A stretch of DNA of 61,054 nt from Hydrolagus affinis (GCA_012026655.1 JAAILG010001841.1:1-61054), one strand, 5' to 3'; positions 8,807 to 60,568 are shown, numbered from the stretch's first letter. Made by a program: numbers and translations. The notes: generated from the letters alone by a model not told the origin.

Positions 8807-9480
8807 GTCCTGGTCGTTGCCGGATCCCGTCCGTTGCTAGGGGCCGGCCGTTGCTAGGGCCCGTACCTTGACGAGGGTTGGAAGACAGCGGCGGCGACGG
8901 CGCGGAAGTGGCGTCATCAACCGCGCGCCCGACGCCGTGCGACGAGTTGAGAGAGCCGCGACCATGACCGGCGGAGTGGATCTGAGCAGTTTCCCGCTGC
9001 ACGGCCTCCTGCCCAAGAAGGAGACGGGTGCGCTCAACTTCTTGAGCAAACACCCCGAGAGCGACGGCCGTGGGGTCCTCATCGCTATCCTAGACTCCGG
9101 GGTGGACCCGGGGGCGGCGGGGCTGCAGGTGAGAGTGACGGGGGGGTGGGGGGTGGGTCGGGCCTGTGTGGAAGTCGCCAAGTGCTGTAGTCCGCCTGAG
9201 TCACTGATTTATGACCGTTGGGTTTGAATGTGATTGACAGGAGTCCGTCCCCCTTCCCCCCGGCCTTGCCCTGCCCCCTCCCCCCCCCTCACCCCCTCCG
9301 ATACTGTCAGCTTCTCATTTAAAGTTCGAGTCCAAGTCACTGGTCGATCTCTCCTTCTCCTGTACTCCTTTTCTTGGCCTCTTCAACCGCACACTGAAAC
9401 GATTCGGGTGCGAAGGGAACCCACGTGTGCGCCGAACGAGAAGGAAGTGTCAGGACAGGTGCTTTGATTCTTTTTGGCTC
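8787..9480 (+). promoter_or_regulatory. CpG-island promoter of TPP2-like gene (GC box, tandem RFX-like sites, ETS/CRE-like composite)
   Basis: Only strongly CpG-rich non-repeat stretch in the window; GGGGCGGAG 8787-8795, CCGTTGCTAGGG at 8831 and 8848, CGGAAGTGGCGTCA 8903-8916, Kozak-like GCGACCATG. Confidence 0.8.
8964..9128 (+). CDS. TPP2: TPP2 exon 1 (catalytic Asp44)
   Basis: [23 protein letters not shown]...[21 protein letters not shown]; donor CAG|gtgaga. Confidence 0.96.
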
Positions 9481-10320
9481 TGCGGCACAAAGCCCACTGC
9501 ATAGTGGATTTATCGTTGACTTTACAGCTAGAAAGACATGACACTTGGATATTGACTTGAGTGTAACTACAATAGTGTTAGTTATACATTATAATAATCC
9601 TTTTATCGGAATGTCTCAAGTGACCACATATGTCAAATGTGGTGATTGTTTGATTTCTTTGTTTAATAAAGCATTCAAAATGACTACTTGTTAAATCATT
9701 CAGGGTCGGAAACCTCTCCATTAAATTCATTACCCTGCTTTCAAGTTAGGTTGATGTTAAGATCAGCATCATGGCGTGTGTTCTTAATGGAAAATGTTTA
9801 ATGCAGTATCATTAAACATGAATGTAGGGGCTTAGTGAAATAGAATAACTTGAAAAGCCCTGTGAAGGGAGCCCACTTCTGGAGCAAACAGTTTCTGCTC
9901 TGTAGCAGTAAGTACATTAATCCAAGAAATAATCAAGCTTCAGTGACACACTTGTGTTGTTCAACACAAAGGAATGATTTCTTCTAGAAACTGAATAATG
10001 CATTAAGGAGGAGGATTACTTCCACATTTAAAAGTATCAACCTGTCTTGGCCATGCTTGCAAAGGCCTTTGGAGGTCTTAGCCAGGCTTGTTCTGTGGTG
10101 CCCAATTTACCTTTTTGAAATCGATCATAACCTGCGTTATTTTTCTATTGAGACTTATATTGAGGTTCACAGCCTGGTGAATTGTACTGAATGATTTGCA
10201 AATGTTATCTTTTGGGGTTTGATTATTTAAAATGATTGTGCTATTCAGTGTATGTAGAAAGTGTCCATACCTGTTTATTAGAAGAATATGAATGATTCGT
10301 TGATTTTATGTGTTCTTTAG

Positions 10321-10449
10321 ATTACAACAGATGGAAAGCCAAAGATTATCGACTTCATTGATGCCTCGGGCAGTGGCGACGTAAATACTTCTACTGTGCT
10401 GGAAGAGAAGGATGGCCTTTTAGTTGGTCTCTCGGGAAGAACTCTGAAG
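10321..10449 (+). CDS. TPP2: TPP2 exon 2
   Basis: tag|[23 protein letters not shown]...LSGRTLK|gtattg. Confidence 0.96.
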
Positions 10450-11124
10450 GTATTGGTAGTAATTCGTCTTACTTTATGTAAAGACAAACACATTCAGAAT
10501 ATTATCTCATTGAGTGCCATTTTTACAATTGTTTTGCGCTTCACAATGAAATAATTAGAATACTACGACTGAATGTTTTATACTTTAAATTCACCTTGTT
10601 AAATGTCAATTATTCATGGTCTTTAGAATCACTGTTGGTAAACTATTTTGCCAATTGATTGGATGGGGGAAGCATCATGACTGAGCTTGAGCCTGTTCCT
10701 GCCTCCACTCATTGCATTTCATAGCAGGGGTTTTTGGATAATGATCAGGAATTCTGACTGCTTTTTCCCTTCCTTAACTCGATCCCTGATTGTTCAGCAC
10801 TTTGGGACGTCCTCCCGACGTGAGAGGAGCTCTGTAAATGTAATACTGGACAGGCTGATCCAGGCTGGGGGAAATGACCAAAGTAACAGAATTGTTACAG
10901 AATTGCTGAACATTTACTCTTCCCGAGTGTGTTTTTGGGAAAACTGCAAAGATCTTTAGTGGTGTGGAATGATTGTAACCTTGAATTGCCACTCTCCCCA
11001 GTTTTCTATAATGTTGTTTTATGTTTGCTTACTTTTCCTATTTCATGTGGATTTAATTTCTAAATGCTCAAAACACTACCACTGAGTTTGATTTGTGATG
11101 TATAATCTACGCAATTTTTTTTAG

Positions 11125-11220
11125 ATACCATCAGATTGGATTAATCCCTCTAGGAAGTACCACATTGGTTTGAAAAATGCATTCGAACTATATCCCACAA
11201 CCCTAAAGGAAAGAATTCAG
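11125..11220 (+). CDS. TPP2: TPP2 exon 3
   Basis: tag|IPSDWINPSRKYHIGLKNAFELYPTTLKERIQ|gtaacg. Confidence 0.96.
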
Positions 11221-11927
11221 GTAACGTCAATATTAACAATTGTGACAAAGATGTTTCTTGCTGCATTTCCCTTCTATCACAGGTCAGTGCTGCACAAACT
11301 GATTGGGGGAAATGGTTTCTATATAAACTTGAGGTCATCATTGATTGATGGAATATCCGGAATACTGTCTGTCCAGTGCCTTGGGACGTCCTCCCGACGT
11401 GAAAGGCGCTATACAAATGTAATTTTGTCGTTGAGTGATACCAGAAAAGATTCAGCAAAAGGTTGTGCTTACATATTCACCTGTCAGTTCACATCACCAT
11501 GAATCTGTGCATTGGTTCAATGAACAGAATTCCTTAATTGACATTATTGGCAATTTGCTAGTACAGTACTGTGATAACTGGCGCTACATTGCATTTTCTA
11601 GTGAATACAAACACCAATGATTACTTATATTGCTTTACCTCATATTTATTGATAATTAGCTGCAGAAATTATTTCATTTTTAAGAACTAATAAACTCAAA
11701 GGACCCATTTACCGTAGTAAGTAGAGAAAGAGAGGGATGATTTATATGCTGCATATATACAATGAGACTTCAAAGAATATTTTTTAAGTTTAAGAAAGTA
11801 CTATGAGAATATTAATATTAATGTGTAACTTTATATTTATTTTCACAAAGCTTCCCTTTGCTTTTTCCACTTTATCAAGTCGTTTTACTTTTTTTCAACT
11901 CTTCTTTTACAACATTTCTGTAAGCAG

Positions 11928-12032
11928 CAAGAGAGACGAGAGAAGCTGTGGGATCCTCCACATCGTGCAGTTTTGGCAAATGCTCACAGAAAACTGAATG
12001 ACTTCAACAAGAACAACGCAAGCTTGTCTCAG
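11928..12032 (+). CDS. TPP2: TPP2 exon 4
   Basis: cag|QERREKLWDPPHRAVLANAHRKLNDFNKNNASLSQ|gtacta. Confidence 0.93.
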
Positions 12033-12367
12033 GTACTAAACGCTGCTGATTAGTTAATGTTTTTTCAGATAATGTCTAATAATCTTAAGATTTTTAGGCT
12101 TCCTAGAGAGCTCAGAAGACAGAATATCAGCGGCATTCAGGACCTATATGCCTTATTTTGCTGGTGTGGTTGAGTGATATTGAACATTACAGCACCCCCA
12201 TAGAGTGGAGGTGAATATAGGCTTGATTTCCTGCTCTGTTCAGTTCTCAAATTTGAGCCTCATCAATAGGAGAGAATGATTAGAGACCTCCGCATTTCTT
12301 AGAAGGGAAAGAAAATTGGTGGAGAGAGTCATGCATGGACAGATCCGTAGTGCCTGCTGGTAGCAAG

Positions 12368-14691: not shown

Positions 14692-14816
14692 GAAGATAAA
14701 TTGATATTGGAGGATCTACAGTGTCAAGTTGATCAACTGAATGCTCTAGAGAAGCAATATATTGACCTAGGGCCGGTCTATGACTGCTTAGTGTGGCATG
14801 ATGGGGAGACTTGGAG
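14692..14816 (+). CDS. TPP2: TPP2 exon 5
   Basis: cag|[41 protein letters not shown](R)|gtgagt. Confidence 0.96.
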
Positions 14817-16369: not shown

Positions 16370-16533
16370 AGCATGCATTGATACCAGTGATTGTGGTGAT
16401 TTCAATAACTGCACAGTTCTCAGGAATTACAGAGAAGCCCATGAATATGCTCAATTGGGCAAGTCTGAAATGCTGAATTATTCTGTCAACGTGTATGATG
16501 ATGGCAACACACTTTGTATTGTTACCAATTCAG
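16370..16533 (+). CDS. TPP2: TPP2 exon 6
   Basis: tag|[26 protein letters not shown]...[21 protein letters not shown]|gtgagg. Confidence 0.96.
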
Positions 16534-16660: not shown

Positions 16661-16815
16661 GATCTCATGGAACACATGTAGCTTCAATAGCTGCAGGACA
16701 TTTCCCAGAGAATCCTGAAATGAATGGTTTAGCCCCTGGTGCCCAATTATTGGCTATCAAAGTTGCTGATTCTAGATTAAACACCATGGAAACTGGGACG
16801 AGCATAATTCGAGCA
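16661..16815 (+). CDS. TPP2: TPP2 exon 7 (catalytic His264, Glu305)
   Basis: tag|(G)[28 protein letters not shown]...[11 protein letters not shown]|gtaagt. Confidence 0.97.
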
Positions 16816-16957: not shown

Positions 16958-18106
16958 CAGCTAAGCCTCTATTTAGGACGCTTCTATTTAGGACGTTTCA
17001 ATTGAAAGAACATAATTTTTTAACACCTTTTGATCGATATAGGACACTTGGATTCGTTTTAACAAACACAATTTTTTGCGCATGCACACTACATACTTTG
17101 AATATCGCAGTCGCATTTCGTGCGTCTTTTTTGTCCATACACATAGTATATTCGTGGGTAAATCATGCTCGCACCTGATATAGTATATCCAGGCGTTTGA
17201 ACTGGCCAATAAAATGGCACTATGTCATTGTTTAAAATCCAGCTGATTTTGAAGCAACCTCACATTACATCAGTATTACAGTAATTTCCAAACATTCCCG
17301 AGCAGCTTCGAGCGATTTACAGCCTCTGCCATGTCTATACCAAGTCGGGAAGAGACAGCAGTAAGTGAAATAAGCAGCGGCCAGAAACCCCGCAAAGTCA
17401 TCACTTTAAATACCAAATTGGAGATGATAAAGCACATCGAGTCTGGCAAAAAAGGTACGGATGTCGGGAGGGCTTTAGGGCTAGCTAGATCAACAGTGGC
17501 TACTATAAAACAGAATAAGGACAATATTCTGGGAAGTTCAAGGTGTGTTACACAGGTGCAAGCAGATTAGCAAAACATAGGAGTGATTTGATGGAAAACA
17601 TGGAAAGAATGCTGAGTGTCTGGATTGAGGATCAGAACCAGCGTAATATACCACTCAACACCCTGGTTCTCCGAGAGAAGGCAAAATCATAGTTTAGGTA
17701 GCTAAATGATCAGGAAACGGCACAATCTTTCAGTGCTAGGAGAGGGTGGTTTCAAATGTTTAAAAGACGCTATGGGCTCCACAACATCAAGATGAGTGGG
17801 GAACTGCAAGTGCCACTGCCACTGTCACACTGCCAGTATTAAAGTTTGCCAGTATTAAAGTACAATACTGTACAGTTACCCCAAGTACCCCTTCTTGCCT
17901 ATGTATGTCAATTTGTGTTTTTTATGTGTTATGTTGTGTGGTTTTGTGTGATATTTAGTGGGTTTAAGGTCCGAAAATTTTGTGAAAAGAATGCATCTCT
18001 GGTTATATAATGGGACCGCATGGGAAATCACATTTTGATTTAGGATGTTTCGATCTAGATACAGTTTTTCAGGAACGTAACCCCGTCCTAAATAGAGGTT
18101 TACCTG
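16958..18106 (+). mobile_element. Internally deleted Tigger (pogo) transposon with decayed CENP-B-like HTH
   Basis: 23-bp TIRs CAGCTAAGCCTCTATTTAGGACG / CAGGTAAACCTCTATTTAGGACG, TA on the right; RKVITLNTKLEMIKH...VGRALGLARSTVATI, then frameshifted ERMLSVWIEDQNQRNIP...GWFQMFKRRYGLHNIK with stops; no DDD domain. Confidence 0.93.
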
Positions 18107-18240: not shown

Positions 18241-18317
18241 ATGATCGAGGTGGTAAAGTACAAGTGTGATCTGGTAAATTACAGCTATGGTGAATCGGCT
18301 CATTGGACCAATTCAGG
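18241..18317 (+). CDS. TPP2: TPP2 exon 8 (Glu331)
   Basis: cag|[25 protein letters not shown](G)|gtacgt. Confidence 0.96.
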
Positions 18318-18994
18318 GTACGTAAAATATCCGCGACATTAGAAATTTAACTGGATAGCTGGCAAAATACAGGTAACTCAGCTATAAAAATAGCCGAGCG
18401 AGGGGTCAGAAACCAGTTTGTCAAGCTACATGAGGCAGTGTCAGCAGAAGAAGAGAGAAGTACATTGAGAAAGGATAAAAAAAAAGGAATTGAGTCATTG
18501 GAACATTTCTTTCAATCAGCTGTGGTACAAGAACTCTGGGGGGTAATTTTAGATATAATGTTGGGAAATCAGTTCAAGGCAGGATTCAAAGATTTGGGGA
18601 AACTGATCAGAAAAGAAGTACATCATTTGTGAGAGGAGTACTATAAATAAATGTGGCTGCTTTTGACTGTGAGATTGTCTATATTATAAATGGCAATTTT
18701 GCACCCTTAGTACATTCAAGAATCCTTTTGTGTGACGTTTAGCAGCAGGCCCCCTTTTCATCTGTTATTTAAATATTCTTGATATGTCTAGTAGTACTGT
18801 CATTGAAGGCTATAATTATTTTTCATTTCTGTAGCTTATTGCTTTATTCAGATATGCAAAATATTGCTTTTATTAGAAAAGACATTACTGACTGTTATAA
18901 AAGTAATACAACATGGCTGATTTCATTTAGATAATTTAAATTATAACTTAAGTGATAGTTTTAAATAGCAATAAAAGTAGCAAAAATGAAAAAG

Positions 18995-19732
18995 CAAATT
19001 ATTTTCTGGATGGGGAGAGGTTAGATAGTGTTAGTGTACAAAAGGATTTGGGTCTCAAAAAGTTAGTTTGCAAGTGCAGCAAGCAACTAAGAAGGCAAAC
19101 GGCATGTTAGCATTCATTGCAAAAGGTTTTGAGTACAAGAGTAGGGAAGTCTTGCTGCAACTGTAAAGGGCCTTGGTGAGACCGCACCTAGAGTATTGTG
19201 TACAGTTTTGGTCTCCTTACTTAATAAAGGACATATTTGCCTTAGAGGGGGTGGAGCGTAGATTCACTAGGTTAGTTCCTGGGATGAGGGGACTGACCTA
19301 TGAGGATAGGTTGAATAGACTAGGGCTGTATTCTCTACAGTACAGAAGAATTAGGGGAGATCTTATTGAAAATATAAGATTCTTAAAGGGGTGGATAAAA
19401 TAGACAGTGAGGGACTGTTTCCCCTGGTAGGAGAATCTATAACCAAGGGTCATAATCTTAAAATTATGGGTCAGCCTTTTAGAACAGAGTTGAGGAAACA
19501 TTTCTTCGTTCAAAGGGTAGTGAATTTATGGAATTCATTACCCCAGAAGGCTGTAAATGCTCAGTCCTTGAGGCTGAGACTGATAGATTTTTAAAATATA
19601 GAGGGATTAGGGGATATGGGGATAGGGCAGGTAATTAGAGTTAGGTCAGAAGATTAGCCATGATCTTATCAAATGGCGGGGCAGGCTCGAGCAGCGAATG
19701 GCCTACTCCTGCTCCTAATTCTTATGTTCTTA
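18995..19732 (+). mobile_element. CR1 LINE 3' fragment (ORF2 C-terminus plus 3' UTR)
   Basis: [17 protein letters not shown]...[10 protein letters not shown]...LGLYSL...RGDLIE, RKHFFVQRVVNLWNSLP; tail GGCCTACTCCTGCTCCTAATTCTTATGTTCTTA; stops and frameshifts. Confidence 0.93.
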
Positions 19733-19834: not shown

Positions 19835-19962
19835 GCGAATATCAAAGGTGATCAATGAAGCTGTTTCGAAGCACAATATTATCTTTGTGTCCAGTGCAGG
19901 CAACAATGGACCATGTCTTTCCACTGTGGGAGCCCCAGGCGGTACTTTATCTAGTATCATTG
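19835..19962 (+). CDS. TPP2: TPP2 exon 9 (oxyanion-hole Asn in SSAGNNGP)
   Basis: tag|[42 protein letters not shown]|gtaggt. Confidence 0.96.
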
Positions 19963-21337: not shown

Positions 21338-21437
21338 GTGTTGGCGCATATGTTACTCCAGAGATGATGATTGCAGAGTACTCCATGCGGGAGAAATTGC
21401 CTGCCAATCCGTACACATGGTCATCAAGGGGACCTTG
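21338..21437 (+). CDS. TPP2: TPP2 exon 10
   Basis: tag|(G)[32 protein letters not shown]|gtaaga. Confidence 0.96.
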
Positions 21438-22948: not shown

Positions 22949-23097
22949 TACTGATGGAGCATTGGGAGTATGCATCACTGCACCAGGGGGCGCCATAGCT
23001 TCTGTGCCCATCTGGACTCTGTGTGGCAAGGAGCTAATGAATGGAACGTCGATGTCCTCTCCTAATGCTTGTGGAGGGATTGCGTTGGTCCTCTCAG
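22949..23097 (+). CDS. TPP2: TPP2 exon 11 (catalytic Ser449)
   Basis: tag|[49 protein letters not shown]|gtagag. Confidence 0.97.
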
Positions 23098-24717: not shown

Positions 24718-24833
24718 GATTGAAAGCTAACAGCATTGGGTATACCGTGCACTCAGTGCGCAGGGCACTCGAGAACACAGCTCTGAAAGTGGAAAATGTT
24801 GAATTGTTTGCACAAGGCTGTGGAATAATTCAG
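24718..24833 (+). CDS. TPP2: TPP2 exon 12
   Basis: tag|(G)LKANSIGYTVHSVRRALENTALKVENVELFAQGCGIIQ|gtaaat. Confidence 0.96.
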
Positions 24834-25461: not shown

Positions 25462-25633
25462 ATTGAAAAAGCCTATGACTATCTCACTCAACATACCGCA
25501 GTAAAGAGTACAAGTTTAGGCTTCAATATCAAAATAAGCCAATGGCGTGGAATCTACCTCAGGGAGCCTGCGTATTTGTCTGTGCCGCTCGACTTGTCTG
25601 TCTGTGTGGAGCCAGTATTTCCTGAAAATACAG
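25462..25633 (+). CDS. TPP2: TPP2 exon 13
   Basis: cag|IEKAYDYLTQH...RGIYLREP...VEPVFPENT|gtacag. Confidence 0.94.
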
Positions 25634-26994: not shown

Positions 26995-27152
26995 AAAACA
27001 ATGAGAAAATTGCCCTGCAGTTACATTGTGCTTTGACTTGTGATGCATCATGGGTGTACATACCTTCCCATCTGGAGCTGATGAATCAATGCAGGCAGGT
27101 GACAGTCCGGGTCAACGCTCGTGGACTCAAGGAAGGACCACACTATACTGAG
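26995..27152 (+). CDS. TPP2: TPP2 exon 14
   Basis: cag|(E)[33 protein letters not shown]...[10 protein letters not shown]|gtttgt. Confidence 0.95.
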
Positions 27153-27456: not shown

Positions 27457-27533
27457 ATTCTTGGTTACGATACAACAGCAATTGGTGCAGGACCAGTGTT
27501 CCGGATTCCAGTTACAGTTATTATTCCATCAGG
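27457..27533 (+). CDS. TPP2: TPP2 exon 15
   Basis: cag|ILGYDTTAIGAGPVFRIPVTVIIPS|gttggt. Confidence 0.94.
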
Positions 27534-27971: not shown

Positions 27972-28078
27972 AATAGATGAAGCTTCTGAATACAAAAGTG
28001 AACATAAAAAGGTGCACTTCAGGCCAGGAGAGATGAAACGGCACTTTTTTGAAGTACCCCAAGGAGCTACTTGGGCTG
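27972..28078 (+). CDS. TPP2: TPP2 exon 16
   Basis: cag|IDEASEYKSEHKKVHFRPGEMKRHFFEVPQGATWA|gtaggt. Confidence 0.94.
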
Positions 28079-28718: not shown

Positions 28719-28873
28719 AGATAAACCTGGTTTCAAAGTCAGAAGATAAAACATCAGAATTTGTTGTTCATGCCCTTCAATTGAAAAAAGAAAAGGCCTT
28801 CCGAGTTCATGAATTCTATAAACACCTGTACCTTTCAGAAAAGGCTTCCCTGCGTGATGCCTTTCCAGTCGTT
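28719..28873 (+). CDS. TPP2: TPP2 exon 17
   Basis: cag|(E)INLVSKSEDKTSEFVVHALQLKKEKAFRVHEFYK...DAFPVV|gtgagt. Confidence 0.94.
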
Positions 28874-29382: not shown

Positions 29383-29499
29383 GCAGGGAGGACTATTGAA
29401 ATTTGTATTGCCCGCTGGTGGTCTAGCCTGGATGATATTGAAATTGACTATTGCATTTCATTCCATGGACTGAGCTGTAATAGTGATAATTTACATATT
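29383..29499 (+). CDS. TPP2: TPP2 exon 18
   Basis: cag|AGRTIEICIARWWSSLDDIEIDYCISFHGLSCNSDNLHI|gtaagt. Confidence 0.96.
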
Positions 29500-30708: not shown

Positions 30709-30809
30709 CATGCCTCTGAGGGTGTTGTGAGATTTGATGCCATCACTTCACTGAAATATGAGGAGCTCTCTCCAGTTTTAACTCTGAAAAATTGGGTCCA
30801 GACTCTCCG
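30709..30809 (+). CDS. TPP2: TPP2 exon 19
   Basis: cag|[33 protein letters not shown](R)|gtaata. Confidence 0.96.
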
Positions 30810-31036: not shown

Positions 31037-31133
31037 CCCTGTGGAAGCCAAAACTAGACCTTTAGGGTCACGTGATGTTTTGCCACATAACAGACATCTC
31101 TACGAACTAGTGCTGACTTACAGCTTCAATCAG
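31037..31133 (+). CDS. TPP2: TPP2 exon 20
   Basis: cag|PVEAKTRPLGSRDVLPHNRHLYELVLTYSFNQ|gtaact. Confidence 0.96.
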
Positions 31134-31537: not shown

Positions 31538-31675
31538 ACTAAGACTGGAGATGTGACTCTCAGCTGCCCCTTGCTGTCTGACTTGCTGTATGAATCGGAA
31601 TATGACAGTCAACTTTGGATTCTCTTTGATCAAAATAAGAGGATGATTGGAGCAGGAGATGCTTATCCTGACAGG
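31538..31675 (+). CDS. TPP2: TPP2 exon 21
   Basis: cag|[46 protein letters not shown]|gtaaga. Confidence 0.96.
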
Positions 31676-37934: not shown

Positions 37935-38054
37935 GCATTAACATTTGCTTACAAGCATGCTTTGGTGAAGCAAACGTATGGGCGCGCCTTGATGTTTGCC
38001 TTCAAAATTGTTGAAAATAAGCCAAGTCAAGAAAACGCAAGGAATTGTATTCAG
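37935..38054 (+). CDS. TPP2: TPP2 exon 28
   Basis: cag|[40 protein letters not shown]|gtttgt. Confidence 0.95.
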
Positions 38055-38738
38055 GTTTGTTTCAGCTTCCCTTTTATCACATATGAAAAGTGAGAATAAT
38101 AAAATCTAGTCAATGTTTAATGTGTAATAATTGGTGTGCAGCAGATTTATAGATGTGTACTCTACAGATAAATATATTACTAGGTGTAATAGGAAAAAAA
38201 TTAAGGCATCTCAGAAAATTTTAATTCTAAGGCTTATGTGCTGAAGTGAACAATTTGTTTCTGTGTTTGTGATTCTCATGTTCAGTTTCCACTTCAGTGG
38301 CAAGTTTAGAGTTACTAGTTTATATTCCTTAAAGAGCGCATTTCCACGAGTCAAAAAAGGTTGTGCAATCATATTTCAAAATGAAATAGTTAATAGAACA
38401 CAGAATCGGAAAGACACATTTTAGACATGATTGTATCTGCAACATTATTCTGTATAAAATTTGTAATTATTGAATTCTGCTGGTAACTGGAAGTGTGTCA
38501 AGGTTACCCATGAGAACTCCATACCCATTCCCTGATTTACTTCCTTTTTAAGTCTCATTGCATGTTTTCCAACAATGAAGCGGTTAGGTTCAAGAATGTT
38601 AAGTATTTTAAGTTATTCATAGATTTGCACTGTAGTTTTTTTAGGGTTAGGGTTTTAGGGTTTAATGCTGTTTAATTAAATTGGCTGCATCAATACACAT
38701 CCAATTGTTTCATTGTTTACTGATCTCTTCTCTTGCAG

Positions 38739-38828
38739 TTGATGAAAACCCTTGGATGGACACACTGTGCCTCATTCGCAGAAAACTCTCTGCTCGTGAT
38801 GTATCCCCCAGATTATGTTCCGTTTTAA
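38739..38828 (+). CDS. TPP2: TPP2 exon 29 (terminal)
   Basis: cag|[29 protein letters not shown]. Confidence 0.96.
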
Positions 38829-38843
38829 CTTTCGTGTCAGTGA

Positions 38844-38849
38844 AATAAA
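38844..38849 (+). terminator. Candidate proximal polyadenylation signal of TPP2
   Basis: AATAAA 15 nt after the stop codon; an alternative distal AATAAA lies at 40206-40211. Confidence 0.45.
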
Positions 38850-40365
38850 GAGTCTCCATGTACTTGTTAATCAGGATTCAATCAGGCATGTACCTGAAAA
38901 TTGGGGTTATCTGGGTTTTGTTGTACTTCAGCTAATCTTTTTCAGTAAAAAAAATCACAAACTTGTGGAAACGTCAGACAAAGATAGACTAGACTTTGCC
39001 ATTATGTTAATGCAATAAGTTTCTGTTAGATAAACTTATTGCAAAAGGAAAAACAATCCATTTCAACTACAAAAATGAGCAGTCTTATCTCAGCCTATGG
39101 GGTTATGTTTGTATTTGTTGTCTTTAAATTGCAGATATGGGAATGTTTTAATTTATTGACTCATTTTAATTTGAATAATTCCATCCCTCTGGATCTCCCA
39201 CTAGCATTCCTCTCTCAACTAGCAGGAAACACTGCCTGGGGCTCAAACTTGTTTTATATGTAAATGGAAGTCCATTTTCAGATAGTGATTGACAATTCCA
39301 TAGCTGTGAAGCCAGTAGAATCATTACCTTAATCTTCTAAACAGAATTTTCCTGCTACAGCATAAGTTTCTTGATTTTCCCCGTGAAAAAGAACTAGCAA
39401 AGGTAAATGTTGTCCAAGTGTAAGGTTCAAACTGGATCTCTCCAATTCTGAGTCTGGATAATTCTGCTGCCATTTAAAATTACCTTTTTTTAAAAAAAAT
39501 GCCTCACCTTCTTTGTAATCCCGTTTTGCATTTACAACCTTGAGCATATTACTGTGTAGCCTCAGACAGCTATTGTAGTTGGTAGTCAAGATTACTGGAT
39601 GCAGACTTCATTTTATAAAAATGCAAGTTCATTCTCGGATCGGAATTTTTTTGTCAATGAAAGTCTTCTCCTAGAAATGTGATGCTTTACTGTTTAAGGC
39701 ATCCACTTGGAAGCCCAGCTGAGATCTGACAAAATTCAACACCCAGCAAGTAGCCAACTCAACTAAGAGTTAATTCTGAAACTATTCCACGCGCTAAAGA
39801 ATGTAAACCAAGTGTCTAAAGTGCAATTCTACCTGGCAATCTGACAATTATTTTGTAGGTGAATGATGGTTTTAATATGAGAGTTTGTGGTACATGTTGC
39901 TTTTATGTATTGAGCTGCATTGATTGCTTTATCTACATTATCATTATTTCAGGGTTTTTTTTAACAACTGTATTCTTTATAGTAATTTTATGAAATGAGT
40001 CACTTAGGTGCCTTCTTTATACAGAATTTCTTGTTTAGATTTTGGTGTTTTGCAGTTATGTATCAGTTGTTTTAAATCAGCTACTGTATTTCCATTTGCT
40101 AGATGTATCTCTGAGATGATGTGTGTATCTGAAATTTGTATTGCCTAATGCTACGTTGTCTCAAATTGTGAAAAAAGATGCTTATAACTACATGCAAATT
40201 TTATAAATAAAATAGGAAGAGCTATTGCAAATATAACTGAGTCTCCAAAATGATTTAACACCGGATAATAGGTGTAAATATATGTAATGTACTTTTATAA
40301 ATGAATTATTGCAAGATTGTGGGAATACAGTAGTTTATTACAAAGTGCTAAATTAAACCAAATCG

Positions 40366-40677
40366 TAATAATAATCCTTGTATTTGATATAGTGCTTTTC
40401 ACGTCTTCTAGATATCTCAAAGCGCTTCACAGAATATACTGTAAAGTGAATTGACTGTATATTTGTGGGCAAAACGTGGCAGCCAATTCCATACAGCAGT
40501 GTCCCACAAACAGTCATGGATTGAAATGACTAATTTTTTTTTTTTTTAAATGGAGGAATTAATATTAGACGTGTGGAGTAAGGAACTTGCCCAAGGTTTC
40601 ACCCTGACCTGCCTGGATTCGAACACAAGTCTCATGCTTGTAAGGCGAGTGCTCTAACCACTGAGTTACATGACTCC
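40366..40677 (-). mobile_element. SINE family A, full length
   Basis: Tail (TAA)nTCCTTGTATTTGATATAG and head GAGTGCTCTAACCACTGAGTTACATGACTCC on +. Confidence 0.9.
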
Positions 40678-41903: not shown

Positions 41904-41970
41904 ATGGCGAGAATCAGCTTCTTATTAATTGCCAGCTTTCTGGGGGTTTCCAATTACGTTGAGTGTGAAG
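41904..41970 (+). CDS. F9: F9 exon 1 (signal peptide)
   Basis: ACAATGG context; MARISFLLIASFLGVSNYVECE|gtaggt, phase 1 matching exon 2. Confidence 0.85.
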
Positions 41971-43053: not shown

Positions 43054-43326
<273 letters not shown>

Positions 43327-43736: not shown

Positions 43737-43761
43737 ATTGAATTTTGGAATATATATGTGG
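43737..43761 (+). CDS. F9: F9 exon 3 (25-nt aromatic stack exon)
   Basis: cag|IEFWNIYV(D)|gtaaga. Confidence 0.93.
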
Positions 43762-44353: not shown

Positions 44354-44467
44354 ATGGGGACCAATGTGAATCATCCCCTTGTTTAAACAATGGCAATTGT
44401 AAAGATGGTATCAATTCATATGAATGTTGGTGCCAAAAAGGTTTTACAGGGAGACATTGTGAAGTGG
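44354..44467 (+). CDS. F9: F9 exon 4 (EGF1, Ca-binding)
   Basis: [38 protein letters not shown]; 114 nt, phase 1-1. Confidence 0.96.
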
Positions 44468-44898: not shown

Positions 44899-45033
44899 AG
44901 ACAATAGCACGGTGCAGTGTGAATAATGGAAAGTGCCAACAATTCTGCAAAACTAATGCCAAACCAGGATTGAAGTGTTCATGTGCTCTTGGCTACATAC
45001 TTGGGCCTGATAAGTATTCCTGTATCCCTAACG
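44899..45033 (+). CDS. F9: F9 exon 5 (EGF2)
   Basis: ETIARCSVNNGKCQQFCKTNAKPGLKCSCALGYILGPDKYSCIPN|gtaaat. Confidence 0.95.
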
Positions 45034-45402: not shown

Positions 45403-45701
45403 TACCTTACCCATGTGGAAAAGTCGTACTTCATAATGGAGTCCAATCACGTGGCATTTCATTGAAGAGCCCCAATATTCTTACTAACATTTCTGATGCA
45501 AGTAACACTTCCGAGACCAACATTAATGCTACAGGGGTTTCTGATGCAATTGACATCACTGAGACCACAAATAACGCTACTGGCATTTCTGATGTAAGTA
45601 ACACTACTGCTTCGATCTACGCAAAGATTGATACTGAAGTAAGTGATCGTACCAGGATAGTGGGAGGAACAGAATGCGAAAAAGGACAATGCCCATGGCA
45701 G
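45403..45701 (+). CDS. F9: F9 exon 6 (linker, activation peptide, protease N-terminus)
   Basis: VPYPCGK...VQSR|GIS...DRTR|IVGGTECEKGQCPWQ|gtcagt. Confidence 0.95.
45483..45608 (+). repeat. Coding 48-bp (16-aa) tandem repeat, about 2.6 copies
   Basis: TNISDASNTSETNINA / TGVSDAIDITETTNNA / TGISDVSNTT; DNA core TTTCTGATG recurs at 48-nt spacing. Confidence 0.88.
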
Positions 45702-45817: not shown

Positions 45818-45935
45818 GTTCTGTTGGTGAATAAAAAGGATGTTGGTTTTTGTGGTGGATCTATCCTCAATGCGCAATGGGTGATAAGTGCAGCACATTG
45901 TTTCATAAAGCCTATTGAATTCAGAGTTGTGGTTG
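45818..45935 (+). CDS. F9: F9 exon 7 (His57)
   Basis: aag|VLLVNKKDVGFCGGSILNAQWVISAAHCFIKPIEFRVVV|gtaagt. Confidence 0.94.
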
Positions 45936-47513: not shown

Positions 47514-48061
47514 GTGAACATAACACTGCAATATTTGAGACAACAGAAAAGTACCACAATGTGGAAAGTTTGACAAAACATCATAGGTATAACTCCAACA
47601 GACATGCATTCGAACATGATATAGCATTAATTAAACTCTCAACACCAATAATATTCAATGAATTTGTGATTCCTATTTGCCTCCCAGAGAAACGTTTTGC
47701 AGATAATATACTGGTGTCCCAGGTCTACGGGACAGTCAGTGGTTGGGGAGTCCTGCTTTTTCAAGGAGCAAGAGCTTCAGTCTTACAGAAAGTGGATGTT
47801 CCATATGTTGAGTCTAGTTCATGTAAGACTTCCAGCAACGTCAAGGTCTCACAAAACATGTTCTGTGCTGGGTATGAAGTAGGGGGGAAAGATTCCTGCC
47901 AAGGAGATAGTGGAGGCCCTCATGTCACCAAGTACAAGAACACTTGGTATTTATCAGGCATTGTTAGCTGGGGATACAGCTGTGCAGCTGCTGGAAAATA
48001 TGGATTTTACACCAAAGTATCACGTTACACTGATTGGATTAAGAAAACAACAGGCATATAA
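47514..48061 (+). CDS. F9: F9 exon 8 (Asp102, Asp189, Ser195; stop)
   Basis: cag|GEHN...HDIALIKL...GKDSCQGDSGGPHVT...GKYGFYTKVSRYTDWIKKTTGI*. Confidence 0.96.
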
Positions 48062-51832: not shown

Positions 51833-51938
51833 CCCACAAAATACACAGTCAATTCATTTTATAGTATATTCTATGAAGTGCTTTGAGACATCTAGAAGTT
51901 GTGAAATGTACTATATCAAATGGAAGGATTATTATTAT
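51833..51938 (+). mobile_element. SINE family A 3' fragment
   Basis: CCCACAAAATACACAGTCAATTCA...ATCAAATGGAAGGATTATTATT. Confidence 0.8.
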
Positions 51939-53621
51939 CTGGGTTTTTCCAAAATTTGGAAAGTAAAATTGATTTCTGTTTCAGTGATGGGTAGTGTGAA
52001 AGTGTTGATTAGAAAATTGTAAGCATAGAGTACAAGATGAGCCACAAGCTATCGACTATGAAAGCTGTTGTTTTTTTTAAATACAACGGAAATGAGCAGA
52101 CGTATAGTGTGAGACAGAAAACAGGCTGTTGGGATACGTGGTATGATATACAAGTGATTTGAAAGACATGACATGGGAAGGGAAACGTTGGGGCGCAGGC
52201 ATGTTAAGAAACCAAGGTTGGAGAACCAGGGGATAGAATGAGTGGAGTGAAGTCAATAAAAGCTTAACAGGCGAAACAGATGTTCTTTTTTCCCATACTT
52301 TCTAATGCCCTTACACCTCCCATTACATAGAAATTTAGTGCAAGAGGGGCATGAACATTGACAACCATCAAATCTTTTGTGCAGAGAAATGAAGTATGAA
52401 AACATACTAACGTACTAAATACTTCCATATGAAGTTTTATGACTTATAATTGCACATAAAAATTAGCAATGAAAATATCCAAAGGGTCAACATAATTAAC
52501 AATAAAAGGTCGTAGAATGTTCATGTATCGATTTAAATATGTTTGTATGTTAACACAATGATAAAAATATGGATTATGTAAACATTATATCCTTAGTTCT
52601 AGGATCCACACATTCAATAATCACAAAATGAAGAGTTTTCTCAGTACTGTATTATGTTATCCTCTGAGCTGGGTACATAACATTTCAGTCAAGGGAAATG
52701 GACCCATTCAACTGGGTGTCCATAAATGGGTACCTTGTTTACCCGTTGGCTGTAAAAGATTCACTTTCTGAATCATATTGTTGCATCTCTTTATGTCTTT
52801 GACTTGTATGAGGTACATATGGGCACAAGTCAAGGGTCTTCATCAGCTTATGGAGCAACTGCTCGAATTAAAGGCTTCCTCTTCCTTTGTTTATGAACTT
52901 GGGTTGTATTTAATTTGCTCTCGCTGACTGGCGTGAAGTACAGATGGAGAAAACATCCAGTCTGATGTTCCTCTAACAAAAGAGGAAGACTAAAAATAGA
53001 AGATTTTTTTTCGCAGAAAGAAATAGCATTGGCATATACAAAATGTATTAGGCCCCCATCTTCCTGAATACTTGCACTGTGAATACTTACACTGTCAAGG
53101 GGATGAACTGACCTTCCTTATTTTGTGGAAGTCCAACCCTGAAAATCAAAATGCAAGATTATATTTTTCTGACTTAACACCATAACCACTTCCTCATCAA
53201 AAAGTCTCAAACAAAAGACTGTCAAGATAAAGCACAGTTTGCAATTAAGTAACAAAATGTACAAGTCAGTAGGGTGGGGATTTTGTCAGGATGAGATCAA
53301 ATGAGCCAAACGGCCTGCTATACTTTGTCCAAACCTCTCATGATCTTGTACAGTTTCCAGTATAGTTCAACACATTAGACCATACCAGTCTCTGGATTGG
53401 AAAGTTTTTGCAAAAATACATTTCCTTCCCAGCAATTACAACCTTCAAAAAGAAAGCTGGTTTTCTAGATCATGGAAACTGGCCAACTGGTATGTAACAT
53501 TTCTAATCCTGTACTTAAAAGGTTCTGAAGCTTTCTCTCTCTCTCTCTCTAAATGTTTCACAAATTCATTCATAAATGGAATTTATGATTTCCACAAATC
53601 TGTCAGGATCTCAGTCGGTGA

Positions 53622-55100: not shown

Positions 55101-55676
55101 TCTATATGGATAATATATTCAAATCAAAATGAGCTAAGATGTCTTACAAGCTGTAACAATATATATTTTTTACAAATGTAATTTTGTGGTGTGTATAGAA
55201 GAGAAAAGGAAGTGTCCCAAAAGTTGCACCATAAACACTGATAAGATGCTCAAATCCAAAGTTACAATCTGAATTGTATGATTTGTATTGTGATTTATTA
55301 AATTCAAACCACACATTTATTCTATGTCCTGTAGTTAATTAGTAAATTATTTTTTTAAATTCAATCTTTAATCCATTTAACTGACAAGCTGGAGGAAGTC
55401 TGCCTGTACGTTACATATTACACATGTTACAATCAAGGCTGCTGCACAATTTCTAAGGTTATTCTCTCTCTCTGAGCTGTTCCAGATCCTTTTTACAAAG
55501 CTTCTCCATATCTCTTAACGCCCAAGACTTTCCAAGTACTTACTTATCTTTCTCTTAAGCATCTCAATTCTGCACCCATGGCATTTCACATTTTCATATG
55601 GCTTTCCTAGGTACATTTGTATTTTATTTAGCTCGAGTTTTAACATTCTGTTTCTGAATCTGCCAGCCAAACTTAC

Positions 55677-55789
55677 CATTGCCCCTCACCATCTTCATTC
55701 ACCAACTGCACCGGGTCCCCTCTTTTTATTAACAGTTCTTCAGAATCTCCTTTTTTACAGTCTGACTGAGTTTTGTACTTTCCAGGGGA
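55677..55789 (-). CDS. MCF2: MCF2 exon, SH3 first half
   Basis: tag|SPGKYKTQSDCKKGDSEELLIKRGDPVQLVNEDGEGQ(W)|gtaagt; phase 0-2. Confidence 0.88.
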
Positions 55790-56139: not shown

Positions 56140-56477
56140 GGAGCTCCTGTGGCTCAGTGGTTAGAGCACTTGTCTTGCAAGCTGGGGAGACCAAGCTGGG
56201 GAGACCTGTGTTCAAATCCAGGTAGGTCAGGGCAAAACCTTGGGCAAGTTTCCTTACTCCACACGCCTAATAATAATCCCTCCAAAAAAAAAACACAATA
56301 ATAAAATTGGTCATTTCAATCCACGACTATTTGTGGGACACTGCTGTGCACAATTAGCTGCCGCAATTCGTCCACAAATATACAGTCAATTCACTTTACA
56401 GTATATTCTGTGAAGCGCTTTGGGATGTCGATAAGATGTGAAAAGCGCTATATCAAATGCAAGGATTATTATTATTA
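56140..56477 (+). mobile_element. SINE family A, full length, with internal 14-bp duplication
   Basis: GGAGCTCCTGTGGCTCAGTGGTTAGAGC head; AAGCTGGGGAGACC twice; (TTA)n tail. Confidence 0.92.
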
Positions 56478-56765
56478 TAATTGCTGAGGAGGCTCAAAGA
56501 GCTGTAGAACAAATATTTGCAAACTGGATAATTTTACTTATAGCTTTGAAAAACCCTAATCACCCATCAGGGAGCTGAGAAAAATCATTAAATGAATGAA
56601 AAAAACAACAAATTAAGTTGCTTTTTCCCTGCAAAGTGTAATGCTACAAAGATTATATTAATGGGTGCTATTTCGAGGAGGTAATTGTAATTAATGTCAG
56701 TCGATTTAGTGTTAATGGAAACTCCTGCAACAACCAACAGCATTAACCCAGGACTAATGAGAACC

Positions 56766-57631
56766 ACAACAACAAAATGACGTTTATATAGCGCCTTTCA
56801 CATCGGGAGGATATCTCATAGTGCTGAACAGTCAGGTCGGGACCTGAGCAGGTTGGGGGGGTGGTGGGGGGACGATCGGGGTGGGGGAAGGGGAAGGAGA
56901 GTGGGAGAGGGGGAAGTTAGGGGGCAGCTGAAGGCACAATCGAAGAGGAAGGTCTTGAGACTGGCCTTGAAGGAGGAAAGGGAGGAAGCAAGGCGGAGGG
57001 ACTGCGGGATGGAGTTCCATAATTTGGGTGCAGAGAGGCTGAAAGCCCGGCCACCGATGGTTGGGTGGTTAGGGCAGTGGACATGGAGCAGGCCTGAGTC
57101 TGCTGAATGGAGGGGATGGGCAGGTTGATAGGGAGACAGCAGGTCAGAGAGATAGGCAGGGGCAAGGCCGTGAATGGCCTTGAAAGTGAGGACGAGGATC
57201 TTGAATTCGATTCTCTGGGGGATAGAGAGCCAGTGGAGACGGGCGAGGGTGGGAGTGATGTCCCAAAGCCTGGTGCGGGAGAGTACACGAGCTGCAGAAT
57301 TCTGAATGATCTACAGCCTGTGAAGGGAGGAGCTGGGAAGGCTGACGAGGAGAGAGTTCCAGTAGTTGAGCCTGGAGGTGATAAAGTCGTGAATGAGGGT
57401 TTCGGTGGCTTGTGGGGGTGAGATAGTGGCAGAGTCTGGCAATATTGTGGAGGTAATGGAAGGCTGTGCCGGTCATGGAGCGGATGTGGGGGAGGAAGAA
57501 TAGTTCGGGGTTGAACAAGACGCCCAGATTCCTGATTGGCTTCGAGAGGTGGAGAGAGCAGCCTTGAACGCTGATGTTGTCAGCGCCTGAGGTGCAGAGG
57601 CACTGACGTGAGCCAATCAGGAGGGCCTCCA
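56766..57631 (-). mobile_element. L2 LINE 3' fragment (ORF2 C-terminus plus tail)
   Basis: EALLIG...IRNLGVLF...AFHYLHNIARL, then frameshifted IQNSAARVL...LHWL..IEFKILVLTFKA.HGLAPAYLSDLL; (GTT)n tail. Confidence 0.93.
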
Positions 57632-58328
57632 TCAGGAGAGCCCCATACTTAAGAAGCTATCCAGTCTCTGGATCCTGATATAATAGTGGAATGTGAAACT
57701 ATCTGTGGAGAAAGTTGTGACACACAAGTGAAGAATGCATCAATTATCATTTTGGAGACTATCATGAACGATACCAGCACATTCCCTGTAGTAGAGGGTA
57801 TCCCTAGGCATGTGAACAAGCTCTAAAGGATATTAATGCTGTCTGAAAGATTTGGAGGAAATGCCAGGAGTTTCAAAAGAAGGAGCGAAGATTGAAGAAA
57901 AATATGAAGGATTAACCTCAGACCACAGGACATGCTAAGGAAAATAGATCTGGAAATGATAGACTGAGGAGAGCTGTGCCAATAGGAAACTGTAAATAAT
58001 ATGGCAAGCAAGATAATAAATATGGAAAGAGCAAATGGGAATCTTCATGAATTCATATGATAAGAGAATTAATGTCTTACATTATTGTAATCATTGGGCT
58101 GAAGCGATGCATTTCAATCCCTACCACTACCAAAGGTGGAACTAATACATGATAGGTCACAATAGGCAACATAACCTGAACTCTAGCTATGAAACATCTC
58201 GAGCATATCAAGTCGCTCTAGTAGCTGTATTAAAAGCATAGTACAGTACTTGGAGGAGATACTGTATTTAGACTAAGAAATAAATGTAAGTTTAATAAAT
58301 TGGATGTGGGTGTGAATCGATCACTGAC

Positions 58329-58423
58329 CAGCTGGTTCACATCTTCCTCTTCAGTGTCATTATTACTGGACAAGTCATCGTTTCCCTCGGAGGCCTCAGT
58401 AAAACGCGATGTCCCAGCCCAGT
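58329..58423 (-). CDS. MCF2: MCF2 exon, acidic linker
   Basis: cag|(D)WAGTSRFTEASEGNDDLSSNNDTEEEDVNQL|gtcagt; phase 1-0. Confidence 0.85.
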
Positions 58424-58897
58424 CTGTGTAAGCAGGAACAAACCAGAATGAAATTCACAGAAATGAAAAAGGGAATCAGAAAATACCGTAAATAAGCAAC
58501 CTGAAAGTGAATGCCTAATTAAAGTCACGGATTGAGTCCCTCTTTGGAACAGAACAAAGGGCGATTGTTTTAGGAGATTAATAATCCTTGCATTTTGATT
58601 TAGTGCCTTTAAGTACTCTGAGATGCTACCCCATGTGAAATGTGCTATAAAAATGTAAGTTGTTGCTTGTTTCAACCCCCAGTAAGACATCTCAAAGTTT
58701 CATGGGATGCAAAGTGTATTGACTATGTATTGACTGTGTATTGCCGAGGTGATGGGTAATTCAATAGCACTTGCCTTTCCCTTTCTACAGTGAATCAAAA
58801 TAATCGCTGGCCCTCCCAGCATTGCCCACATCTAGAACTAGATTTAGCTTCTTGCTCACTTTCTAGTAATAGTTCTAGATAAAATGAAAATGTATTT

Positions 58898-59402
58898 CAA
58901 CAACAACTTCGATTTATATAGCACCTTCCATGCCAGACAGTGTCTCAGAGCCAGGGGCAGAAAGGTGACCAAAGGCGCGGTCGAAAAGAAAGGTCTTCAG
59001 TTGGGACCTGAAGCTGAGAAAAGAGGGGGCGAGGCGAAGGTAGTGAGGAAGGGAATTCCAGTGCCTCGGGGCATAGTGGTTGAAGGCACGGCCGCAGAGG
59101 GTGGAGCGGAGGATTCGGGGGACATGGAGGAGGCCAGACCCAGTGGAGCGAAGGCAACTGGTGCTGGTTTGAGGAGAGAGGAGGTCAGAGGTAGGAGGGT
59201 ACAGAGGATATGAAGACAAGGGTGAGGATCTTGAAGTCGTCCTCTCTGGGATAGGGAGCCAGTGAAGTCTGGCAAGGACTGGGGTAATGGGGGAGCGAAG
59301 TTTGGTGCAGGTGAGAATGCGGGTGGCAGAGTTCTGAGTGAGCTGGACTCTGTGGATTGTGGAGGAGGGGAGACCGGCGAGGAGGGCATTGGAATAGTCA
59401 GC
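58898..59402 (-). mobile_element. L2 LINE 3' fragment (second family)
   Basis: RSTGSGLLHVP...GRAFNHYAPRHWNSLP...FRSQLKTFLFDRAF; CAACAACAAC tail on +. Confidence 0.92.
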
Positions 59403-59467
59403 TGAACACCATAGCTCTAGGATTATTACGGGTGGGGTTGAAAACTGCCATATATTTAAACTATAGC

Positions 59468-59745
59468 ATTCACTGCATTTGACGTAGAGCTTTTTGCGTC
59501 TTCTAGACGCTCAAAGCGCTTCACAAAATATACTGTAAAGTGAACTTCTGGGCTGAACGCGGCAGCCAATTGCACACCGGTGTCCCACAAACAGTCGTGG
59601 AGTGACCAATTTATTATTATTTTTTCAAGGGATTATTATCAGGCGTGTGGAGTAAGGAAACTTTCCCACGATTTCGCCCTGCCTGGAATTGAACCCAGGT
59701 GTCTCTTGCAAGGCGAGTGTTCTAACCATTGAGCGACAGTAGTCC
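59468..59745 (-). mobile_element. SINE family A, near full length
   Basis: Matches the reverse complement of other copies from TGCATTTGA to CTAACCATTGAGCGACAG. Confidence 0.88.
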
Positions 59746-60138
59746 ATAAAATCTTCATGAAAACTTTACGCATAACATGGCTTGGGTGGATATTGTATCA
59801 ATGCATTACTGAATATTTCTTCTCTAAAAATAGTTCTGTTAAGTTTTAAGAACAAAAGCTTTAGAAATGCAGCACCCACTGGCCCCTACATTAAACTTTA
59901 TCCTGGCAGCCAACCCAGGCAGGAGGACTGAGTGAAGATTTTCAGAACAAGCTGTTCTTGACAGTGACAGGAATGCAGCCTGGTTAGAACGCCCCAAAAC
60001 CACACCTACGCAAACACAAGTAATAAAGCTTTATTTGCAAATAAAAGAAAACATGACATTCTGATTGTGCTAGATTGCAACCTAAAGATAATCAAGGTGA
60101 TTTAAGAGCAGCTCTAGAAACTTGTTGGAAAGCAATAC

Positions 60139-60245
60139 CTTTTCGTGGTGAAAGATTTGGTGAAAAAACTATGTTTTCTAAAACCACTGGACTTGGAAGG
60201 TCAGAGTCATTTTCCTCTGAACTCAAAGAGGCCCTCTTTTGCTTT
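60139..60245 (-). CDS. MCF2: MCF2 exon, Ser-rich linker
   Basis: cag|(G)KQKRASLSSEENDSDLPSPVVLENIVFSPNLSPRK|gtattg; phase 2-1. Confidence 0.85.
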
Positions 60246-60356
60246 CTGTAGAAAATCAATTATATAAAAAAAACAATTAGATGAGTCAGAAAGGAATATG
60301 TAAGAGCTTGTAAGTTTACACTTGGAAACAATTTAGACTTTGGGCACTGCACATTT

Positions 60357-60409
60357 TTCTGTCTGTCCGTCTGTCTGTCTCTCTCTCTCTCTCTCACAAT
60401 GTCTCTCTC
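60357..60409. repeat. (TCTG)n/(CT)n microsatellite
   Basis: tctgtctgtccgtctgtctgtctctctctctctctctc. Confidence 0.85.
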
Positions 60410-60516
60410 AAACAGAGCATGCAAACCTAATGTAATATTGATTGGATTTGTCTCATTGCTTTGCAAGGCAAACACTGCAACTGGCATTTGATTTTTGTGG
60501 ACTGTTTAAGACTTAC

Positions 60517-60568
60517 CCTGGAGACAGCAAAATCTGATCTGAAACCTGATGATGCAGCGTGCTGTCTT
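60517..60568 (-). CDS. MCF2: MCF2 exon, likely following the PH domain
   Basis: cag|DSTLHHQVSDQILLSP(G)|gtaagt; phase 1-2 compatible with the next exon. Confidence 0.75.

Follow-up and report, generated by a model that had tools for sequence, protein, structure and literature searches.

Vertebrate tripeptidyl-peptidase II (TPP2) is regarded as a single-copy housekeeping giant protease. According to the available part of PMC2933905, TPP2 assembles into a two-stranded complex of more than 5 MDa. Here we describe a TPP2-like gene, labelled TPP2L, in a 61,054-nucleotide stretch of DNA from Hydrolagus affinis (GCA_012026655.1, JAAILG010001841.1:1-61054; "the window" below is this whole stretch, which contains no N). 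It is probable that TPP2L is an intact, transcribed second gene of the TPP2 family, that it arose by duplication in the vertebrate stem and was kept alongside canonical TPP2, and that its product is likely a TPP2-type exopeptidase. In a literature search that left supplements aside, no paper was found that links TPP2 with a vertebrate paralogue or describes such a gene.

TPP2L is encoded on the + strand, with a coding span of 8964-38828 (ATG at 8964, TAA at 38826-38828) divided into 29 exons. The coding sequence is 3723 nt long, which corresponds to 1240 codons plus the stop; it has no in-frame stop, and no codon split by an intron reads as one. A canonical vertebrate TPP2 aligns with the window over its entire length, in 29 collinear tblastn high-scoring segment pairs (HSPs). 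The splice sites were picked by frame and length around these HSPs, and every exon has its AG acceptor and GT donor (56 of 56 splice signals are canonical). A previous reading of the window from its sequence alone (the sequence-only reading) had proposed an intact TPP2 gene of 29 exons and 1240 residues with a full catalytic set; the model agrees with it in all these respects, and the string cited from exon 13 is present at 25462-25633.

Exon 1 (8964-9128) carries the ATG and the catalytic Asp motif DSGVDP, and falls within the 2-kb bin that has the highest GC content in the window (0.475, most bins being at 0.33-0.41). Exons 2 (10321-10449), 3 (11125-11220), 4 (11928-12032) and 5 (14692-14816) are defined by HSP, splice sites and frame, as are exons 10 (21338-21437), 12 (24718-24833), 16 (27972-28078), 18 (29383-29499), 19 (30709-30809) and 20 (31037-31133). 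Exon 6 (16370-16533) contains the glycine aligned to G252. Exon 7 (16661-16815) has the catalytic His motif HGTHVA and the glutamate aligned to E305, and exon 8 (18241-18317) the glutamate aligned to E331. The oxyanion Asn motif AGNNGP is in exon 9 (19835-19962) and the catalytic Ser motif GTSMSSP in exon 11 (22949-23097). Exon 13 (25462-25633) is diverged. It is followed by exon 14 (26995-27152), exon 15 (27457-27533), which was placed by hand from its HSP with a frame check, exon 17 (28719-28873), exon 21 (31538-31675), exon 22 (32069-32313) and exon 23 (32838-32916), the last defined by its splice sites, with RNA reads that carry its tail. Exons 24 (35173-35321), 25 (35885-35981), 26 (36460-36587), 27 (37202-37385) and 28 (37935-38054) and the coding part of exon 29 with the TAA (38739-38828) are delimited by RNA joints, together with the frame for exon 29.

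Ten single exons were scanned against Pfam and five of them pass the cut-off: exons 7 and 11 match Peptidase_S8 (40.9 and 26.9 bits), exon 14 matches TPPII_Ig-like-1 (PF21223, 57.1 bits), and exons 21 and 22 match TPPII (PF12580, 63.4 and 73.2 bits). Among the other five, two have sub-threshold matches to the same families (exon 9, Peptidase_S8, 19.3 bits; exon 13, TPPII_Ig-like-1, 19.2 bits), one matches an unrelated family at chance level, and two match none. The catalytic triad is in the order D (exon 1), H (exon 7) and S (exon 11), exons 2-6 encode the long insert that separates Asp from His, and the TPPII-specific domains downstream of the protease domain are all above the Pfam cut-off. 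Judged by these domains, TPP2L is a member of the tripeptidyl-peptidase II family (S8 subtilases with TPPII domains).

In an alignment with a mammalian TPP2 (P0224), the equivalents of D44, G252, H264, E305, E331, N362 and S449 are all kept in TPP2L (seven of seven). We take E305 and E331 to be the glutamate pair which binds the free N-terminus of the substrate (a literature search on these glutamates gave no paper) and N362 to be the oxyanion asparagine; G252 is presumably the glycine involved in the assembly of the TPP2 complex. More generally, 18 canonical gnathostome TPP2 (from sharks, a ray, fishes, amphibians, a lizard, a bird and a rodent) have 564 invariant columns in their alignment; TPP2L retains 490 of these (87%) and changes 74.

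TPP2L is not the canonical TPP2. Its identity to each of the 18 canonical proteins is 63.5-66.6% (pooled exon alignments, 1221-1226 sites), and is no higher with sharks (63.8-66.1%) than with bony vertebrates (63.5-66.6%). In contrast, the canonical TPP2 of the zebra shark is 72-77% identical to that of bony vertebrates, and 85-98% identical to that of other chondrichthyans. The unusual divergence on which the sequence-only reading had remarked is therefore real, and its claim of a second-copy paralogue also holds, since the gene branches outside the canonical clade and has an orthologous fragment in the whale shark beside the canonical gene. That fragment (P0001, a 108-residue piece of a whale-shark gene model in EukProt) is nearer to the window than to canonical TPP2: 64 of 81 residues (79%) are identical to exon 22 of TPP2L, and 53 of 81 (65%) to the canonical TPP2 of the zebra shark. 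A canonical TPP2 of the whale shark exists as well (XP_048454142.1, P0404); it shares a 90% cluster with that of the zebra shark. At least one shark therefore carries both genes.

An exhaustive search of representative proteins with exon 22 gave 210 matches at E<=0.001, of which the best 150 were listed. Among the 59 best of the 210, which were classified, P0001 is the sole sequence of the TPP2L type; P0002-P0009 are fragments of canonical TPP2 from a bird, mammal, teleost or sturgeon. The same search of the 90% clusters matched one protein, again P0001. A search with a full-length octopus-like TPP2 (P0125) found no TPP2L-type protein among the best 120 of 2594 matches, all of which are canonical or invertebrate. 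Further proteins of the TPP2L type, if annotated, would rank lower than the matches listed. Shark annotations probably include TPP2L already, without a name for it, so that the novelty would lie in its recognition rather than in its kind.

The age of the duplication was examined with 29 reference TPP2 (5 chondrichthyan, 6 ray-finned, 7 lobe-finned or tetrapod, and 11 invertebrate). The alignment was split into 29 exon partitions, each exon of the window being entered as its own fragment and P0001 in the exon-22 partition only, and the partitions were analysed jointly with IQ-TREE (LG+G4, 1000 ultrafast bootstraps). In this maximum-likelihood tree, which the sequence-only reading had suggested as a check, the window gene does not group within canonical TPP2: it pairs with the whale-shark fragment (support 100), all canonical gnathostome TPP2 together form the sister clade of this pair (100), and the vertebrate clade as a whole is supported at 100. 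Approximately unbiased (AU) tests reject three other groupings of TPP2L: that with Chondrichthyes (p 0.0013, at a log-likelihood difference of 22.9), that with Osteichthyes (p 7.7e-5, difference 23.3) and that with selachians (p 2e-30, difference 123.8). By the Shimodaira-Hasegawa test alone, the first two of these are not rejected (p about 0.096). With amphioxus, hemichordate and echinoderm outgroups only, the AU result holds (p 0.0016 and 0.0011). The distance between TPP2L and the whale-shark fragment over exon 22 is 0.27 substitutions per site (81 residues, on a branch that evolves about 1.5 times faster than canonical TPP2). Canonical TPP2 of sharks and rays are separated by a distance of the same order (0.18), and the shark-bony distance is far greater; on these 81 residues, this fits a cartilaginous fish. 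The tree and the AU tests support a duplication of TPP2 after the amphioxus split and before that of chondrichthyans and osteichthyans, as would be expected of a vertebrate ohnologue.

The gene is intact and transcribed, and its transcript is correctly spliced in a close relative. A run search found the stretch in 13 runs from seven studies, one of them a fish gut metagenome; the indexed runs that hold it are all non-RNA. Two raw-read polyA RNA runs of one organism were mapped onto positions 35100-40000. The reads define five GT..AG joints, 35321>35885 (11 and 19 reads), 35981>36460, 36587>37202, 37385>37935 and 38054>38739, with 8-25 reads for each joint in each run; these are identical to the last five introns of TPP2L (exons 24-29). 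In one run, the end of exon 23 is present as an overhang before 35173 on 33 reads. The TPP2L reads have a single direction throughout the gene; RNA in the opposite direction is found in a repeat bin at 37724-37887 and, at a depth of less than one read in one run, at 36904-37395, and nowhere else in the mapped region. The RNA depth is 6-39 in each bin of 38872-40000, beyond the stop codon, so that the 3' untranslated region (UTR; 38829-40000) is at least 1.17 kb long.

The RNA reads are 95-99% alike to the window, and hence belong to a close relative or to a divergent individual; the assembled DNA is not their source. The DNA contigs of two organisms, and the RNA of one of the two, differ from the window by about 2% over 35100-40000, and have some of these differences in common; none of the runs used seems to be the assembled individual. 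Of five exonic differences listed between RNA and window (104 further differences lie beyond them), three are silent and two change a residue, which is too few for a rate.

Three kilobases downstream of TPP2L, the window contains a second gene on the + strand, which encodes a clotting-factor-like protease with the arrangement Gla, EGF1, EGF2, activation peptide and protease. It extends from an ATG at 41904 to a stop that ends at 48061, and its eight exons (67, 158, 25, 114, 135, 299, 118 and 548 nt; 487 codons) all have AG/GT sites. The sequence-only reading had placed an F9 gene about 3 kb from the TPP2 stop; the distance to the factor-IX-like ATG is 3075 bp, of which at least 1172 bp are 3' UTR of TPP2L. 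With the TPP2L transcript reaching at least 40000, less than 1.9 kb is left before the ATG of this gene, and its promoter may overlap or abut the end of the TPP2L transcript.

Exon 1 of this gene (41904-41970) encodes the ATG and a signal peptide, exon 2 (43127-43284) the propeptide and Gla domain (Pfam Gla 59.3 bits; against the PDB, factor IX 56.4 bits and factor X 53.8 bits), and exon 3 (43737-43761) is the exon of 25 nt. Exon 4 (44354-44467) encodes EGF1 (factor IX 65.3, factor X 54.6 and factor VII 51.2 bits) and exon 5 (44899-45033) EGF2 (Pfam FXa_inhibition 42.6 bits; factor IX 42.3 and factor X 39.9 bits). Exon 6 (45403-45701) encodes an activation peptide of 68 residues with five N-x-S/T sequons, followed by IVGG; the peptide is preceded by a single Arg and not by a furin site (there is no RRKR), and ends in TR|IVGG. 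Within this peptide, two NATG-x-SD units form a near-repeat. Exon 7 (45818-45935) gives uninformative PDB matches, with trypsins on top, and exon 8 (47514-48061) encodes the rest of the protease domain and the stop (Pfam Trypsin 162.1 bits; factor IX 202.5, factor Xa 192.2 and factor VII 177.4 bits). Factor IX is therefore the top solved coagulation factor in four of the five exons compared (those of Gla, EGF1, EGF2 and the end of the protease).

A search with the last exon returned only partial proteins, at most 56% identical, with best identities of 47-56%; 34 of them were used for a tree (35 rows). In this tree the protease of the window is in a polytomy with mammalian F9, sauropsid factor X and a fish clade which includes a catfish "factor IXb". 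The cluster names of its relatives give only this catfish entry and a fusion model from a sturgeon, which has no name. The latter (P0422, Acipenser sinensis MGH0162493.1) has about 385 N-terminal residues fused to a factor-IXb-like protease; a Pfam search on these 385 residues found no family, and the protein is probably a merged prediction.

The neighbour shares with factor IX its domain order, its eight exons (including the third of 25 nt and the fourth of 114 nt), and an activation peptide with two cleavage sites, each at a single Arg and neither a furin site. It differs from factor IX in its 68-residue peptide with five sequons and in not being placed in the F9 clade by the last-exon tree, where it is in the polytomy. 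The activation peptide of human factor IX has 35 residues according to the available part of PMC6850207, about half the length of that in the window. The same source describes sirtilin as a sixth class of vitamin-K-dependent protease, present in cartilaginous fish including elephant shark and, in the part available, absent from eutherians. Sirtilin activation peptides are of about 70 residues with TR-type flanking sites and no furin site (PMC6850207, in part), as are the 68 residues and TR|IVGG here. Peptide length was considered as a marker for F9 against sirtilin and then dropped: it decides nothing, because the factor-IXb-type proteins of catfish and sturgeon also have long peptides (81 and 65 residues, counted from PCG up to the Arg that precedes IVGG). 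The snake sirtilins are reported to be about equidistant from human factor IX (37.9%) and factor X (37.8%) (PMC6850207, in part), whereas the neighbour protease leans to factor IX over factor X; this comparison is with sirtilins as described there. On the sequence, the neighbour is probably factor IX. The F9 gene claimed by the sequence-only reading thus stands as an intact, co-directional Gla-EGF-EGF-protease gene which matches factor IX best in four of five exons; its identity as F9 is left in the polytomy.

On the opposite strand, where an MCF2-like gene had been claimed, three exon-like pieces with good splice signals were found, one of them SH3-like, and nothing specific to MCF2. The first piece (55676-55789, -) resembles an SH3 domain in its first half, by weak and generic matches (Pfam SH3_1 at E 0.0073 and 16.3 bits, below the cut-off of 22.9; Atlas 0.93 to SH3 clusters; PDB at E >=0.13). 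The second (about 60139-60245, -) is a Ser-rich open reading frame (ORF) with an AG acceptor and a GT donor, approximate ends and no Pfam family, and the third is a 51-nt piece (60518-60568, -; ttacag ... gtaagt) at the right-hand limit of the sequence-only reading. Four minus-strand ORFs were searched against Pfam, two against the PDB and one against Atlas; a candidate ORF had no PDB match at E<=10. No DH or PH exon was found on the minus strand between 48.1 and 61 kb, and such exons may lie beyond the end of the window. A candidate for the second SH3 half near 50466 was rejected, its splice phase being incompatible with the first half, and the minus-strand gene is left without a model for this reason.

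In human, TPP2, FGF14, MCF2L, F7 and F10 are located on 13q, and a convergent gene downstream of F9 is the pattern of Xq27. The human order at Xq27.1, as given in the available part of PMC11947168, is FGF13, SRD5A1P1, F9, MCF2, MIR505, ATP11C ... SOX3, with no TPP2 among the genes listed. The location of TPP2L in the FGF13-F9-MCF2 paralogon, as a retained ohnologue, is plausible. Of this proposal of the sequence-only reading, the timing of the duplication is upheld by the tree and the AU tests; the slot in the paralogon is a candidate one, next to a factor-IX-like neighbour and to minus-strand pieces with nothing specific to MCF2. The literature search found no paper that describes the paralogy block by these gene names, and PMC8244163 mentions none of them.

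The best-surviving alternative is that TPP2L is an ancient paralogue from outside the F9-MCF2 block, beside a sirtilin or another vitamin-K-dependent protease, either in a different paralogon (e.g., of the FGF12-MCF2L2-ATP11B type) or after a small-scale duplication. The last-exon polytomy, the low best identities, the sirtilin-like peptide and the minus-strand gene, whose MCF2 identity is putative, all speak for it. On the other side are the scores for factor IX over factor X in four of five exons (202.5/192.2, 65.3/54.6, 56.4/53.8 and 42.3/39.9 bits), the equal distance of snake sirtilins from both factors, the long peptides of the fish IXb-type proteins, which make length non-discriminating, and the convergent gene downstream. 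This alternative deserves to be kept in mind as the less likely location.

It is also conceivable, and improbable, that TPP2L is the sole TPP2 of its genome, after a reciprocal loss of the canonical gene or the translocation of one fast-evolving gene. No canonical TPP2 of H. affinis has been seen, the sequence examined being the window. However, the whale shark has both types, the cluster members listed include canonical TPP2 by name from 11 species of chondrichthyans, and TPP2L is outside the canonical clade, and is therefore not a translocated orthologue.

Still less probable is a fast-evolving TPP2 duplicate specific to chondrichthyans, whose deep position would be a long-branch artefact. 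The stem and tip of the TPP2L branch measure 0.255 + 0.116 from the duplication node, compared to about 0.25 for the path to canonical shark TPP2, and a single additional sequence breaks this branch. Nevertheless, the AU test rejects the groupings with Chondrichthyes and with selachians under two outgroup sets, and the identity to shark TPP2 is no higher than that to bony-vertebrate TPP2. A strict count of site patterns, which is a check less sensitive to long-branch effects, gives nine sites where TPP2L has the residue of the outgroup majority and all canonical gnathostomes share a derived one; no site has a derived state shared by TPP2L with canonical shark TPP2 only, or with that of bony vertebrates only.

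That TPP2L is a decaying or non-functional copy, as its divergence above the level of orthologues and the two residue-changing differences among five in the RNA might suggest, is scarcely credible given its open frame of 1240 codons, its 56 canonical splice signals, its catalytic and anchoring residues, the 87% of invariant columns kept and its correctly spliced polyA RNA.

Several points weigh against TPP2L as an old second TPP2 kept beside the canonical one. The tree has no cyclostome and no canonical TPP2 from a chimaera, was computed with a site-homogeneous model only, and long-branch attraction to the outgroups would yield the same topology. The second sequence of this type is one 81-residue exon of one gene-model fragment, and because the whale-shark orthologue is a single exon fragment, the branch is long and thinly sampled. 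The weakest exon of TPP2L is exon 17, which keeps the lowest share of the canonical-invariant columns (13 of 22). A canonical TPP2 in the H. affinis genome is inferred, from a study in which the window is the sequence examined; the RNA comes from a relative and not from the assembled individual; and both the enzyme activity and the formation of oligomers are predictions made from sequence.

With these points taken into account, an old second TPP2 in cartilaginous fishes remains the preferred reading. The duplication of TPP2 would date from the vertebrate stem, between the branching-off of amphioxus and the divergence of cartilaginous from bony vertebrates, and TPP2L would have been retained under purifying selection, beside canonical TPP2, in at least two chondrichthyan lineages. 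With its triad, oxyanion asparagine and the glutamate pair that anchors the N-terminus in place, TPP2L most likely acts as a TPP2-type subtilase exopeptidase, and its TPPII Ig-like and C-terminal domains may build a giant oligomer. Its position 3 kb upstream of a factor-IX-like gene would fit an ohnologue retained within the FGF13-F9-MCF2 block. A stronger version, in which TPP2L is a genome-doubling twin that cartilaginous fishes alone have kept for more than 400 million years, in an FGF13-F9 slot that is empty in humans, with spindles of its own or mixed ones and a distinct function, is doubtful as a whole.

An old, intact and expressed second TPP2 raises the question of whether two types of subunits co-assemble in the spindle or form separate complexes, and of which roles of TPP2 (post-proteasomal trimming, antigen processing, neuropeptide breakdown) are divided between the copies, or were lost elsewhere with the second one. 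TPP2L is also an added marker for the FGF/F9-F10/MCF2/ATP11/SOX paralogy blocks in the reconstruction of the early genome doublings of vertebrates.

The window also contains several repeats. The repeat at 37724-37887, in intron 27 of TPP2L, is a short interspersed one, with a summed contig depth of about 7e5; RNA reads cover it in either direction. Similar ORF-like copies are found near 900-1200, 5000-5300, 7700-7900, 40350-40520, 51850-51980 and 56150-56500. Intron 7 of TPP2L contains a remnant of a pogo/Tigger-type transposase (17331-17689; CENP-B_N 45.2 bits, HTH_Tnp_Tc5 24.6 bits). The open frames at 18438-19594 (+) and 56819-59510 (-), the latter with one copy at 56.8-57.7 kb and another at 58.9-59.5 kb, resemble the tails of reverse-transcriptase elements of the long interspersed (LINE) type; a Pfam search on these frames gave no match.

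Among known TPP2, the only solved structure found is that of Drosophila TPP II (PDB 3lxu), residues 908-969 of which align with exon 22 of TPP2L (39.4 bits). The Drosophila enzyme is distantly orthologous to all vertebrate TPP2 alike, and so cannot separate two vertebrate copies. The canonical vertebrate TPP2 is much closer. Like TPP2L, it has 29 collinear coding pieces, a subtilase triad in which a long insert follows the Asp, the TPPII domains (Ig-like and C-terminal), and the same seven checked residues; canonical proteins, such as those of Stegostoma (XP_048389482.1) and Rhincodon (XP_048454142.1), are also in the same length class (1247-1262 residues, compared to 1240). TPP2L differs from canonical TPP2 in having a clotting-factor-type gene as its neighbour, and in the direct joining of exon 23 to exon 24 in the RNA, with no additional short exon between them.

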